Under the pieces are notes generated by a model. It ran no database searches. It was not told the DNA's origin and worked only from the letters and a program-made list of their open reading frames with translations. A stretch of DNA of 64,000 bases from Anthoceros angustus. Taxonomy: Eukaryota > Plantae > Anthocerotophyta. Made by a program: the position numbers and the translations under genes. The stretch is taken from NCBI GenBank assembly GCA_010909165.1, contig MU008171.1:310001-374000 (forward strand). The letters run 5' to 3'. Shown piece after piece: positions 43,001-48,175 of this stretch (position 1 is the stretch's first letter; every line of letters begins with the position of its first letter).

Positions 43001-43680
43001 AATTCACTAAAACAAAGGGGAGAGACCGAAAAGTACCGGTCCCTATCGGTGGAAAACCGTGGGTGGGTGGGAAATGCCGGTTCCCAGAACCGACAGTGTA
43101 GCCGGTCGACATGAAGCCCTGATTCCGTGTTCAACCGCCCTAACAGGGTTAAGACTAGTCACTAGCCCTGAATTCGAAACCCTAACCCTAAACACCACGA
43201 TCTGATTTGAAGTCATATCACGTCCCGACGACGAGGCAAATCTGGCAACCCTTTTACAGCAATCGATCGACCCACGTCTCCATAGTGCAAGGCTCTTGGT
43301 GGAGGGCGGCGGACAGCGGTGGGGGGAATTTGGGGCTTGCCAAATATCGAAAGCGAAGTAGGACACCGGCTTGGCTTTGTTGCAACCAGTGAGACAAGTG
43401 TCCACAAGCAAACTTCTTTATTCTTTATTCAGGGTTGTCGTTATAGGGTTTCTATAAAGTGGAGGTGGATCTTTGTGGCGCCGACCTCTACTCTACTCAT
43501 GGCATCACCAACTAGACAACTCTTCTTTCCTTTGAAAGAGAGCTGTTGGCGGAAGTGGGGAATGGAAAACAGTGCAACTGAATGCAGGGTAGCATATAAG
43601 ATTTTTCTGGAGGATAGTACTTGGGCTTTCCATGGGTGCTGCTGGACCATTGAAGCCGTTAACGGGGCCCCCCACAGATT

Positions 43681-46278
43681 TCATCTCTGCTGCGTGCCAC
43701 TGGCGTCAGATTCAGTGCAGCAGAAAGCAGGCGGGATCGGCCCACAAACATAGTGCGTGAACAGCTTGTTCACGTCGAAGCCATTGAAGCAGCTCCCCGC
43801 CGACTTCGTGTAGGCACCCATTCTAGGGAATACCAGCCAGTCGCCACACTGCAACTGTGGCAGCCACACATTTCTCATAATAGTGTCCAAACCATCACAG
43901 GTGGGACCGAAGATGGTGGACTGATAGAGCTGCTCATCCTTCCAGGAGTCGGTACCTGCCTCTTCTTGTGAAAGGAGGGGAAGGGAGCGCACAGACAAGA
44001 CTGCATGATCGTACAGCAAACAATTCATGGAGCCATAAACTCCATCATTGATCCAGTACTCGGGTATCTTGTTCCCTCCCTTCACCCGCAGTCTGCTTCC
44101 GAAAATATGCGTAGCTAGAGTGAAGGCTTCTTCTGCAAAGAAGCGGCCAGGCTCTGCGATGACAGAGACACCCATAAAGTGAGGGAAGTGCCTGTCCAGA
44201 GCCTGGTTGATTGCTGCAGCAGCCGCCTTGAACCTGACACCGATGCCTCCATCCGAAACGAAGCCACCACCAATATCCAGCACTTTGAGGGGAGGCATCC
44301 CCAAGTTGCCAGCGGTGTCGAACACTCTTCTTGCAGACTGTATTCCGTCTGCAAAGGAGCTAGCCTCCGATGCACCACTGCCCACATGGAACGCAACACC
44401 CACTACCGAAAGTCCTAGGTGTTTGGCTACGGACAGGAGGTGCTCACACTCATCCATCTCTGCCCCATACTTGGTGCCCAGAGGGCAGCGTGCACCACGA
44501 TCTTCCACCCAGATTCGAATAAGCAGCTCAGCCTTGGGATGATACTTTCGAAGCTTGTACAACTCAACTTCAGAATCGAAAGTAGTTCTCAAAATTCCAC
44601 AAGCAGCTGCCTCCACCATGTGCGACGGAAGCTTGCACGGATTTGCAAAGATAATCCGATCAGAAGCGCACAGGACGCTCTTTGCAGCAGCCAGCTCCGC
44701 CTTGCTAGCCACGTCAAGTCCTGCACCCAGGTTCACTAACAAGGACATAAGGCGAGGGTCCCGGTTGCACTTGACAGCATAAAAAGGCTGCACTCTGGGC
44801 ATGGCAGCCTGCCACTCCAACCACAGCCTCAAAACCACCGCAATATCAAGGATGTAGAACGCATCCTCCGTTCCCGAAGCCAAGACCTTCTTCCGGATGT
44901 ACGAATCCATGTCAGTAGAGGAGGTCAGAATGGATGGGTTGACTGCTGACAAGAATGTGCTCAGACGAGGAAGACGCTGCAGGTTGTCGACATGACTCTC
45001 CATCTTCCCACACCCATTAAGCCGACGAGTAGTATCCAGCCTCACAGCCTTGCCCTGCGAGGAATCGGTGTTGGCTCCCACCACCTCCCCAAACAGGGGC
45101 AGCGGACACACAGCAGAGCTCCACAGGCCGGCAATCTTGTAAGTGTGGAAGATGATAGCACTGTTGCTCCCCAACTCCTGCCTGCTGGTAGACTCACATG
45201 CATACCCCTGAGGGCATATGGGCTGGTTCCACGAACACCCTGCCATATCCTGGCTGCTGCACCCCGTCACAAAGAGGGCGACAGAGAATTCCTGCGGCTT
45301 GAACACAGCCACAGCCTTACCCACCAAGCTCTGCAGGTCTGTGGTCTTGGGCCCGTACCCCATAGCCTCGTACGACGCATAAGACCATCCCTCCTCAGGC
45401 GAGATGTGTATCGTGGAGTGCGCTCCTGGACCAGCATGAACACCCAACCCTTCCAGCGCATTCATGCTATACCCGACAGGCTCAAACGCAAAGTCACAGA
45501 TGTCAGCCTGTGGGTTGATATCCGCAATCCCCGATGCCCTGCTCATCTCGGCAGCCGTGGGAAACACGGCCTTCTGGAACTGAGCCGCGCACTGCCTGCT
45601 CAGTTTTGTCATGCAGCACTCCAAGGTGTACACAGGCTCAGCTTGAGCAGGAGCAGCGACATCCTCAGCCTGGGCGCAGTACGCGTGCCAGTTGTGAGGC
45701 TTGGACGGATCCCCCATCACATAGGCCTGGCCTCCTGCACCCAGCCCCCCGAAGAACTTGTCCAGGAACGTCACCTCCTCTGCGAAGCTGGAATGTGGAA
45801 ACGGCTGCACCTCCGGGAAGAGGTAGCTGCCGCGAGTGTACTTCACCCGGTACGTCTTCAACCGCAGGCGAGCTGCGTGGGCCAGCAGCAGCGGGATCGC
45901 CCGCAGCAGCTGCGTCGTCCCGCAGGTCTTGATCACCAGCCTGTGAGGGTATATGAAGAGCGAGCTTTCGCTCAGCACGTAGCTGTCCACCCAGGTGTTG
46001 CTCAGCTCCTTCACAATTGTGCATTCCGCTGCTCTGAGCAGCTTGTTCAAATCCTCCCTGCCGAGCGCCCGCAGTCCCAGCCCTTGGGGATCGGAGAAGA
46101 GCGGAGCCGGAAGGAATTCCACCTCCAGCCTCTTCTCGAAGCCTTCAAATCCTGGAAGCGCCGGTGCTTCCGCTGCTGCTGGTCCTCCTCCTCCTCCTCC
46201 GTCCGTTGCCGCTGCTCCCGCCGCCACCATCCCCGCCGCCCTGTCATCCGGAGCTTCCGGCACAAAAGACACCCCCAT
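43681..46278 (-). CDS. Bifunctional S-adenosylmethionine decarboxylase-ornithine decarboxylase fusion (AdoMetDC/SAMDC-ODC), 865 aa, intronless
   Basis: AdoMetDC motifs GFEGFEKRLEV, DSYVLSE/SSLF (pyruvoyl Ser105), KTCGTT, GYSMN, STIHISPE.GWSYASYE. Fold-III PLP ODC motifs PFYAVKCN (K503), IIFANPCK, FHVGSG, LDIGGGF, AEPGRFF, INDGVYGSMNCLLYDH, FGPTCDGLD (C794), MGAYT, FNGF. One uninterrupted frame with Kozak gccgccATGg. Confidence 0.97.
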   Translation of the reverse strand: MGVSFVPEAPDDRAAGMVAAGAAATDGGGGGGPAAAEAPALPGFEGFEKRLEVEFLPAPLFSDPQGLGLRALGREDLNKLLRAAECTIVKELSNTWVDSYVLSESSLFIYPHRLVIKTCGTTQLLRAIPLLLAHAARLRLKTYRVKYTRGSYLFPEVQPFPHSSFAEEVTFLDKFFGGLGAGGQAYVMGDPSKPHNWHAYCAQAEDVAAPAQAEPVYTLECCMTKLSRQCAAQFQKAVFPTAAEMSRASGIADINPQADICDFAFEPVGYSMNALEGLGVHAGPGAHSTIHISPEEGWSYASYEAMGYGPKTTDLQSLVGKAVAVFKPQEFSVALFVTGCSSQDMAGCSWNQPICPQGYACESTSRQELGSNSAIIFHTYKIAGLWSSAVCPLPLFGEVVGANTDSSQGKAVRLDTTRRLNGCGKMESHVDNLQRLPRLSTFLSAVNPSILTSSTDMDSYIRKKVLASGTEDAFYILDIAVVLRLWLEWQAAMPRVQPFYAVKCNRDPRLMSLLVNLGAGLDVASKAELAAAKSVLCASDRIIFANPCKLPSHMVEAAACGILRTTFDSEVELYKLRKYHPKAELLIRIWVEDRGARCPLGTKYGAEMDECEHLLSVAKHLGLSVVGVAFHVGSGASEASSFADGIQSARRVFDTAGNLGMPPLKVLDIGGGFVSDGGIGVRFKAAAAAINQALDRHFPHFMGVSVIAEPGRFFAEEAFTLATHIFGSRLRVKGGNKIPEYWINDGVYGSMNCLLYDHAVLSVRSLPLLSQEEAGTDSWKDEQLYQSTIFGPTCDGLDTIMRNVWLPQLQCGDWLVFPRMGAYTKSAGSCFNGFDVNKLFTHYVCGPIPPAFCCTESDASGTQQR

Positions 46279-46384
46279 GGCGGCGGATACCTATCCCTCC
46301 TACACTCGTCCGTACGCACGCACCACCTGGACTACAACACTCACTCCCTTCACCTCCCCTCACCAGACAAGACAAAGAAGACAG

Positions 46385-46416
46385 GCAGACAGACAGACAG
46401 ACAGACAGACAGACAC
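46385..46416. repeat. (agac)n microsatellite in the leader or leader intron of the AdoMetDC-ODC gene
   Basis: Directly visible. Confidence 0.9.
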
Positions 46417-46621
46417 GAAGATTGGGCGAATGCGGTTGTGCGGAGCGAGGGCGAGACGAGGCCGCTTCCCCCCCTGGCGGGAGAGCTGATCTGCAAAGCC
46501 GCAGAGCAGCCCCTGGACGGCACGAATTCAAGGCCTTGCAAGCAAGACTAAGCTGCTGTGGTACGGCAGGGCAGTGGTGGCCTCTACGAATGGCAGCTGC
46601 AGCGGGAGGCGGCGTTCGATA

Positions 46622-46945
46622 TCAGGACGGCTTCCTCACGCACTGCGCACAACACAGGGATGGCCATCGTTCATTCGCCAGCGCCATGGAATGAAAGCAA
46701 TGCATTCTCGCAACACCGGGAAGTTCGAGAATGGAAGCATCACAAACGGATGGAAGCAGCACAAACGGATGGAAGCAGCACAAACGGTCGGGTGGATCCC
46801 CTCCCCCCGCCCCCCTCACCTTGCTGTAGGCTGCAGTGCGGAACTTGTCGACTCCTCCGTTGGGGCGAACGTCCTCCGCGACGTAGCCGAGAGGCGTCTC
46901 GAATTGGCGCTTCTGTCCACGATTACCGCCTTTGCTCTCCGCCAT
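46622..46945 (-). CDS. Conserved-peptide 'small' uORF of plant AdoMetDC mRNAs, 48 aa, two exons (46945-46820, 46642-46622)
   Basis: MAESKGGNRGQKRQFETPLGYVAEDVRPNGGVDKFRTAAYSK|CVRKPS* matches the family pattern MESKGG...YEAPLGYSIEDVRP.GG..KF.SA.YSNC...PS; GT-AG intron 46819-46643. Confidence 0.95.
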   Translation of the reverse strand: MAESKGGNRGQKRQFETPLGYVAEDVRPNGGVDKFRTAAYSKVRGAGGGDPPDRLCCFHPFVLLPSVCDASILELPGVARMHCFHSMALANERWPSLCCAQCVRKPS

Positions 46946-46953
46946 TATAGCAT
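46945..46953 (-). promoter_or_regulatory. 'Tiny' uORF (ATG CTA TAA) overlapping the small uORF start by 1 nt
   Basis: Minus strand reads ATG CTA TAA TG; the last A of TAA (46945) is the A of the small-uORF ATG. Confidence 0.92.
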
Positions 46954-48175
46954 TCAGCCAGGAGAGCTGAGACGCGGACATGGAGAGATTGCAGCATGAG
47001 CACGACGCTTTCCGAGAGCGAGGCCTGGCGATCACCCGGCGGCGGGGCGGAAAATGGCGGATGGCGGCGGGCGGCGGGCGGCGGGGATGCGATCCAGGTT
47101 GCCCTAGCGGGGCGGGACGGCGCGGGGAGGGAGCGAGAGGGCGAGAGGGCGAGAGGGCGACGAGGGAGCGAGGCGAAGGAAGCGAGTGCGGGGCTTTTGC
47201 ACACAACACAAGACACAAGGAAGGGAAGGAAGGGAAGGCGGAGGGCGGCAGGGCGCGGGATGTACAAGTGGGGGATCCGAGCCCACTCCCGGGCCAGAGC
47301 CTCGGGGCTCAGGGCTCGGGGCTCAGGGCCGAGGCGAAGCTGGGCGCACGTCGGACGCGGCAGGGCCACGTGAAGCGGTACTAGGCATGGTCAACTGCAT
47401 CATGGGGGCATGCCATCACCCTTGTCATGATGCCACATGTTGGGGGTACACGTGCCTAGGGCCTGGGGGCATGATGACGCCACCGCCACGACCGCCGGGT
47501 CCCGGGCCCCGGACCCCGGACCCCGCACCCCGTCCCTCCAAACCCTAAATCATGGTACGTACAATAGAGGGTGCTCCCCCGAGGCCCGACCGACAGGCGC
47601 CGCGAATCTTCCTGTCATGAAAAGTTCGAGTTCGGCCTCTCAGAGACGCTGGGACCTGAGAAGAGAGAGGGAGAGAGAAGGAGAGAGCCACAGCCTGGTG
47701 CCTGGTCCCTGCTGCCTGCTGCCTGCTTCCTGCTTCCTGCTGCCTCCTGCCTGCTGCATTCCTGCCTCCTCCCTCCTGCCCAACCGCCTTTCCTACCTGT
47801 CTTCCTCCTACCTCCGTATTTTTAGTGAGTATCGTAACGCACACCAATCAATGGATATAAAAAATATTCTATGGTGAATCTTCACCCTAGAATATATACA
47901 TAGAATATAGAATATAGAATATATCCTAGAATATATATATTATTTATACATCAAGGTATATGAAATAAAAATATATTTTATATTAGTTTGGTAATGGGTG
48001 GTAGTGAGTGAAGTAGGTCTTACCCTAAAATTCACAAGCCTAAGGATGATTAGGTAGACATCTTTAACTTATAATTAACATGACAAGGTGTGTAACATGT
48101 GGCCTCTCTAAGTGAATTCTACAATTATCGTTTATCAAGCTTCTTAAACAATTTGCTAGAGACTTCCCAACGTGA

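Follow-up and report, generated by a model that had tools for sequence, protein, structure and literature searches.

The minus strand of the window, by which we mean the whole 64,000 nt stretch of Anthoceros angustus DNA that was analysed (contig MU008171.1, positions 310,001–374,000), encodes an AdoMetDC that runs on into an ODC, preceded by a leader with a tiny and a small uORF. This locus raises the question of whether ODC has been placed under the translational switch known from plant AdoMetDC genes and, if so, whether it came there by a recent gain. All coordinates given below are those of the window.

The AdoMetDC-ODC transcript and its leader

The coding part of the locus and its 3′-end were organised as follows:

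43681–46278, minus strand: main ORF, AdoMetDC-ODC fusion, 865 aa, intronless; start context GCCGCCATGG
45136–46152, minus strand: AdoMetDC domain (aa 43–381); Pfam SAM_decarbox, E 1e-101; potato 1mhm, E 5e-73
43816–44835, minus strand: ODC domain (aa 482–821); two ODC-type Pfam domains; human ODC 1d7k, E 1e-98
43467–43680, minus strand: 3′ UTR, to the end of the RNA contig (X1)

AdoMetDC and ODC were therefore encoded by one uninterrupted ORF on one transcript, and the main AUG (46278) was in a strong context with G at both −3 and +4. Alignment with the potato and human AdoMetDC revealed that the YVLSES/SLF self-cleavage site (ES/S), the Cys of KTCGTT and the His of STIHISPE were kept. Alignment with human ODC likewise revealed FYAVKCN (with the PLP lysine), HVGSG, the GGG loop of DIGGGF, the Glu of AEPGR and the Cys-Asp of GPTCDGLD. 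Judged by these motifs, both domains look active.

For the organism itself one sequencing run (X1) was found, and for two relatives, organisms B and C, many; contigs were compared with 4101 bases of the window, those of B and C being ~93% identical. The X1 contig (3586 nt) aligned to 43467–46347, 46423–46642 and 46820–47212, with 11 more letters beyond this point, and had no mismatch over the coding sequence (2881 nt matched). Its joint 46642>46820 represents the exact removal of a 177 nt intron (CT..AC on the plus strand, GT..AG on the minus strand), which identifies the contig as RNA-derived and puts the leader and the fusion ORF on one mRNA. The same joint was present in contigs of the relatives (runs X2 and X20), so that the intron predicted at 46819–46643 in the initial annotation was supported by RNA from X1, X2 and X20. 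The placement of ODC under the AdoMetDC leader, also proposed there, was borne out by the X1 contig, in which the intact AdoMetDC-ODC ORF followed the leader on the same spliced mRNA. Rather than beginning downstream of 46945, the case that had been named as speaking against this placement, the contig reached ~47223; contigs of this kind do not show where most transcripts begin, nor do they rule out shorter internal ones.

That the fusion or its leader is an artefact of assembly or annotation, for example two genes misjoined, is barely conceivable. The X1 contig differed from the window only in small ways and only in G-rich tracts of the G+C-rich 5′ part of the leader (47043, 47096 and 47123, with GG and GGG inserted and one A>G), whereas this independent contig matched 2881 nt without a mismatch and the same architecture was found in many independent genomes; the explanation was rejected on the RNA contig match. 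Strain variation may account for the differences at 47043, 47096 and 47123, as may a homopolymer or assembly error on either side.

The leader contained the following features:

46279–47223, minus strand: spliced 5′ leader of the AdoMetDC-ODC mRNA, 768 nt after intron removal; 5′ end approximate (RNA contig end)
46923–46997, minus strand: extra uORF read in a different frame, 24 codons and a TAA stop; C at both −3 and +4, a weak context
46979–46981, minus strand: extra AUG in the small-uORF frame, which would add 12 codons, MSASQLSWLNAI; T at both −3 and +4, a weak context
46945–46953, minus strand: 2-codon tiny uORF, ATG CTA TAA (M L stop); T at −3 and C at +4, a weak context
46820–46945, minus strand: small uORF exon 1, 42 codons (MAESKGG...FRTAAYSK); A at −3 and G at +4, a strong context
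46643–46819, minus strand: leader intron within the small uORF, 177 nt, GT..AG (AG at 46644–46643), five ATGs; RNA contig joint
46622–46642, minus strand: small uORF exon 2, TGC GTG AGG AAG CCG TCC TGA, encoding CVRKPS plus stop (46624–46622)
46279–46621, minus strand: ATG-free spacer from the small-uORF stop to the main AUG, 343 nt, carrying a (CTGT)9 microsatellite

The final A of the tiny uORF was also the A of the small-uORF ATG at 46945 (ATG CTA TAA-TG, 46953–46943), and of the two AUGs that of the small uORF was in the stronger context (A/G at −3/+4 compared to T/C). From the ATG at 46945 to the GT at 46819, exon 1 encoded the peptide MAESKGGNRGQKRQFETPLGYVAEDVRPNGGVDKFRTAAYSK. Together with exon 2 the small uORF had 42 + 6 = 48 codons, ending in ...KPS with proline as the penultimate residue. 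Both the overlapping tiny uORF with its shared A and the 48 aa small uORF with an intron near its 3′ end were thus confirmed at 46953–46622, and the ATG-free stretch initially put at ~340 nt measured 343 nt. This spacer (46621–46279) contained 0 minus-strand ATGs, compared to a mean of 2.9 in dinucleotide shuffles and none in 2% of 5000 of these, and its folding was weaker than that of all 100 shuffles (z +2.8). As the X1 contig reached ~47223, the AUGs at 46997 and 46981, which were absent from the initial annotation, belong to the transcript leader. The uORF starting at 46997 overran both the tiny and the small AUGs and stopped at 46923.

Some further observations were made on the non-coding parts of the leader. 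The (CTGT)9 microsatellite lay at 46379–46415 (minus strand), within the AUG-free spacer, and in relatives B and C 138 unlike letters took the place of the stretch 46305–46470; the spacer can therefore vary in sequence while being AUG-free, at least in the window. The leader intron contained a 19 nt unit three times in tandem (46731–46787). It was also in frame and without a stop over its 59 codons (46643–46819), so that unspliced mRNA would encode a 107-codon uORF with the same CVRKPS end; this was not so in Marchantia, Selaginella, Glycine or Physcomitrium.

Because the leader is on the same spliced mRNA as the fusion ORF, any effect of the uORFs on the main ORF covers the ODC domain. It could be argued that the leader nevertheless controls AdoMetDC only and that ODC is made mostly from an internal transcript or start, or from another gene, with the two arms of the pathway uncoupled. 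The contigs are compatible with internal transcripts, the linker between the domains contains methionines, stand-alone ODC paralogues occur in other seed-free plants, and one contig of relative C lacked almost exactly the ODC domain. We nevertheless consider uncoupling very unlikely, as the ORF is continuous and intronless, the stretch from leader to 3′ UTR was covered by one contig in two organisms, and the fusion architecture has been retained across dozens of green lineages, an argument for the joined protein being what functions.

The contig of relative C (run X20) skipped 1053 nt (43811–44863, minus strand, codons 472–823) in frame. The gap had non-canonical ends (minus-strand TG..TA), where two similar short motifs shared 1 nt of microhomology, and no contig covering the skipped part was found among those of X20. 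The gap could be a real deletion or isoform of the ODC domain, or an artefact of assembly or reverse transcription; if real, it would offer a snapshot of how a stand-alone AdoMetDC originates. Additionally, relatives B and C had separate short contigs (794 nt and 608 nt) that matched only the conserved AdoMetDC stretch 45899–45951. From their flanks and loose ends (YVLSESSLFI), these are a second, paralogous AdoMetDC transcript. Their word depth was 114 and 509, compared to 18–43 for the fusion contigs, contig depth being no measure of expression.

Leader family and distribution of the layout

Exon 1 of the small uORF matched Pfam PF08132 (AdoMetDC_leader) with 60.2 bits (E 1.7e-16), the curated cut-off being 25 bits. 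The Pfam and alignment queries consisted of exon 1, as exon 2 with its 6 codons was too short to search, and the joined 48 aa peptide was used only for tblastn against fetched loci. The stand-alone AdoMetDC genes of Selaginella (L008), Glycine max (L009) and Physcomitrium (L010) each had a tiny uORF of 2–3 codons with a 1-base overlap, an intron directly after ...AAYS-N and a last exon encoding C(V/I)RKPS-stop. A C-terminal small-uORF exon like that of the window was present in these three loci and in the Marchantia fusion locus (L001). Alignment of the peptides revealed a core, YE.PLGY..EDVRP.GG..KFR.AAYS, that was common to fusion and stand-alone genes.

Compared with the plant AdoMetDC dual-uORF leader (PF08132, CPuORF homology group 3), the window had the same tiny uORF of 2 codons, the same 1 nt overlap and a small uORF of 48 codons; the lengths given for plant AdoMetDC small uORFs range from 48 to 55 codons (PMC2811004). 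The peptide core, the ...KPS end, the weak tiny and strong small AUG contexts, the codon at which the intron interrupts the small uORF near its 3′ end, the AUG-free spacer and the intronless main ORF also agreed. The two differed in that the main ORF of the window runs on into a complete ODC domain, and in that the window has two more weak-context AUGs upstream of the tiny uORF. On anatomy, the window leader matches the plant dual-uORF switch detail for detail and is its orthologue.

A whole-length protein search revealed fusions of ~780–1030 aa in the liverworts Marchantia, Riccia and Calypogeia, in Selaginella and in the ferns Adiantum and Ceratopteris. Fusions were likewise found in the Zygnematophyceae Mesotaenium, Spirogloea and Closterium, in Klebsormidium, Chlorokybus and Mesostigma, and in many chlorophytes. 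The best match was 56% identical to the window protein, with 52–56% in the listed streptophytes and 40–46% in chlorophytes. The public entries for these proteins are mostly hypothetical or carry single-function names, and in the public gene calls of Selaginella, Klebsormidium and Adiantum a separate PF08132 'gene' is annotated directly upstream of the fusion. Wherever DNA or transcript contigs were fetched, a small uORF was found upstream of the fusion ORF:

Marchantia (L001): tiny/small pair with 1 nt overlap; small uORF present, with a CVRKPS exon after the intron
Selaginella (L002): tiny/small pair with 1 nt overlap; small uORF present
Transcript contigs L006 and L007: pair with overlap; already spliced, 47-codon uORF; the first AUG is the tiny AUG
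Closterium (L011): pair with overlap (ATG ACC TTA TGA-TG); small uORF present
Klebsormidium (L003): no tiny uORF; small uORF present
Coccomyxa (L005): no tiny uORF; small uORF at 26 bits, barely over the cut-off
Micractinium (L004): no tiny uORF; only a ...CVKKPS-like end

In the loci compared here, the tiny uORF of fusion genes is thus present from the Zygnematophyceae upward. The fusions of Marchantia, Selaginella, Adiantum, Ceratopteris, Klebsormidium, Closterium and the chlorophytes have the same domain order as the window. The window copy is set apart from them by its different land-plant lineage, its two extra upstream AUGs and its stop-free in-frame leader intron.

Direction of change between fusion and stand-alone genes

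In the initial annotation the locus was read as a native plant AdoMetDC gene that had gained ODC at its 3′ end, with ODC under a borrowed leader. A tree of AdoMetDC domains was rooted on the chlorophyte fusions; the trees were built by a quick method (SH-aLRT only) in which several deep nodes are unresolved. Every algal branch was a fusion. The stand-alone genes of mosses, lycophytes, ferns and seed plants fell within the land-plant clade, intermixed with fusions, and the window AdoMetDC branched near the base of this clade. Forcing all fusions to one side of a branch cost 111 log-likelihood units (AU p 7e-6), the groups for this test having been set by architecture before tree building. A few of the 'stand-alone' models may be truncated predictions; those of Selaginella, Glycine and Physcomitrium were confirmed as stand-alone from DNA.

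In the tree of ODC domains, those of the fusions tracked the species tree, with the window in the land-plant fusion clade (SH-aLRT 96). The stand-alone ODCs of Sphagnum, lycophytes and seed plants formed a clade of their own (SH-aLRT 95) that split early in streptophytes. Klebsormidium, Closterium and Mesostigma each had a stand-alone ODC in addition to the fusion in this tree. The Closterium stand-alone models were nearly identical to the ODC part of its own fusion and may be recent copies or split gene models.

Since the leader and the fusion occur together from chlorophytes to ferns and the stand-alone genes are nested among them, the polarity within green plants is that the fusion is old and the stand-alone gene derived. 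That a native AdoMetDC gene recently gained ODC, and with it the idea of a borrowed leader, was rejected on this distribution and on the AU test. The simplest reading of these comparisons is that the fusion with the small uORF is ancestral in the green lineage, that the common ancestor shared by land plants and Zygnematophyceae already had the tiny uORF with its 1 nt overlap, and that stand-alone AdoMetDC genes originated when the ODC domain was lost, repeatedly, and the leader kept. The leader and fusion would then be older than land plants, and the AdoMetDC genes of seed plants and mosses would be descendants without the ODC domain that have retained the leader. On the sequences compared, this layout goes far back and is found widely among green algae and seed-free plants; it is no local invention. 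We consider it likely that the window contains the orthologous plant AdoMetDC dual-uORF leader in its ancestral place before a bifunctional AdoMetDC-ODC gene.

As the arrangement was inherited rather than invented in the window, the result is less dramatic than the initial annotation suggested. It does show that among green algae and land plants without seeds the fusion is the common state, standing behind the best-studied polyamine-sensing leader of plants, and the classic angiosperm AdoMetDC gene looks like this fusion minus its ODC half.

Predicted translational control of both decarboxylases

In the established model of the plant leader, the tiny uORF shields the small-uORF AUG and permits reinitiation when polyamines are low, whereas at high polyamines leaky scanning brings ribosomes to the small uORF and its peptide stalls them (Hanfrey 2005, as cited in PMC2811004). 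Polyamine-induced arrest at the small-uORF stop codon has been reported together with mRNA decay (Uchiyama-Kadokura 2014, as cited in PMC5587730). We infer the polyamine response of the window leader from this Arabidopsis model. At low polyamine levels, the tiny uORF, and perhaps also that at 46997, would capture scanning ribosomes and so carry them past the small-uORF AUG; after termination these ribosomes would initiate again at the main AUG. When spermidine or spermine is high, more ribosomes would leak through to the strong small-uORF AUG, the nascent peptide would arrest its ribosome at its own stop codon, and the main ORF would be blocked, with the mRNA probably destabilised.

The two decarboxylases of polyamine synthesis, AdoMetDC and ODC, probably share one translational brake. 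As they are one ORF, this brake would cut both syntheses together, lowering that of putrescine and that of decarboxylated AdoMet jointly and at a fixed ratio. A second AdoMetDC transcript in the relatives and stand-alone ODCs elsewhere mean that the switch need not control the entire supply of putrescine and decarboxylated AdoMet. The AUGs at 46997 and 46981 lie outside the canonical tiny/small model; the 46997 uORF would serve as a second shield, and the 46981 start would yield a longer arrest peptide.

The uORFs might instead be conserved and translated but damp the main ORF constitutively, or answer to a different signal, without polyamine feedback in this lineage. The functional data on the leader are confined to seed plants, the extra upstream AUGs change the simple competition between the tiny and small uORFs, and the tiny uORF is absent in Klebsormidium and the chlorophytes, so that the two-uORF logic is not universal. 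Weighed against this, the peptide core and the ...KPS end needed for arrest are conserved from algae to angiosperms, and both the 1 nt overlap of the tiny and small uORFs and their weak and strong AUG contexts are retained exactly. On these grounds a damper indifferent to polyamines appears unlikely, though less so than the uncoupling of ODC considered above, and the polyamine-responsive brake is the reading we prefer.

To our knowledge, plants have no antizyme, and ODC feedback in its absence is poorly understood. With the fusion and its leader, joint control of the two arms of spermidine synthesis acquires a specific mechanism that can be tested, and Marchantia, for which genetic tools exist, has the same layout. 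A broader proposal, which we offer as possible and no more firmly than that, is that the dual-uORF switch arose on the AdoMetDC-ODC gene, which it would still gate in seed-free plants and streptophyte algae, setting the supply of putrescine and aminopropyl donor jointly as a stand-in for antizyme; the AdoMetDC genes of angiosperms and mosses would be truncated descendants that kept the leader.

The bifunctional AdoMetDC/ODC of Plasmodium likewise has an N-terminal AdoMetDC and a C-terminal ODC in one ORF. The window protein is compact (865 aa) in comparison, the Plasmodium protein being much larger with parasite-specific inserts, and we know of no dual-uORF leader for Plasmodium. Coordinated output of putrescine and decarboxylated AdoMet has been proposed as the benefit of the Plasmodium fusion, which was termed unique in a 2011 review (PMC3253432). 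No description of the plant or algal fusion or of its leader was found in a search of the open literature that covered spellings without a slash, and the main text of the Ivanov/Atkins/Michael review of polyamine uORFs makes no mention of the fusion (PMC2811004). We regard the leader in the window as an ordinary member of a known family, here in control of a main-ORF variant that has been little described; it was inherited and is not new.

Polyamine-sensing arrest peptides are also found in other leaders of polyamine-pathway mRNAs, namely the MAGDIS uORF of mammalian AdoMetDC and the uCC of AZIN1 and ODC homologues. These differ from the window leader in their independent origins, their other peptides, their single uORFs or non-AUG starts and their single-function targets. 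A C-terminal Pro-Ser is common to the plant small uORF and the animal uCCs (PMC2811004).

An extra AUG in the small-uORF frame, 12–21 codons upstream, was present in Selaginella (L002, position 2998) and Klebsormidium (L003, position 2908) as well as at 46981 in the window. Its occurrence in the three loci may be due to chance or may provide an alternative, longer arrest peptide.
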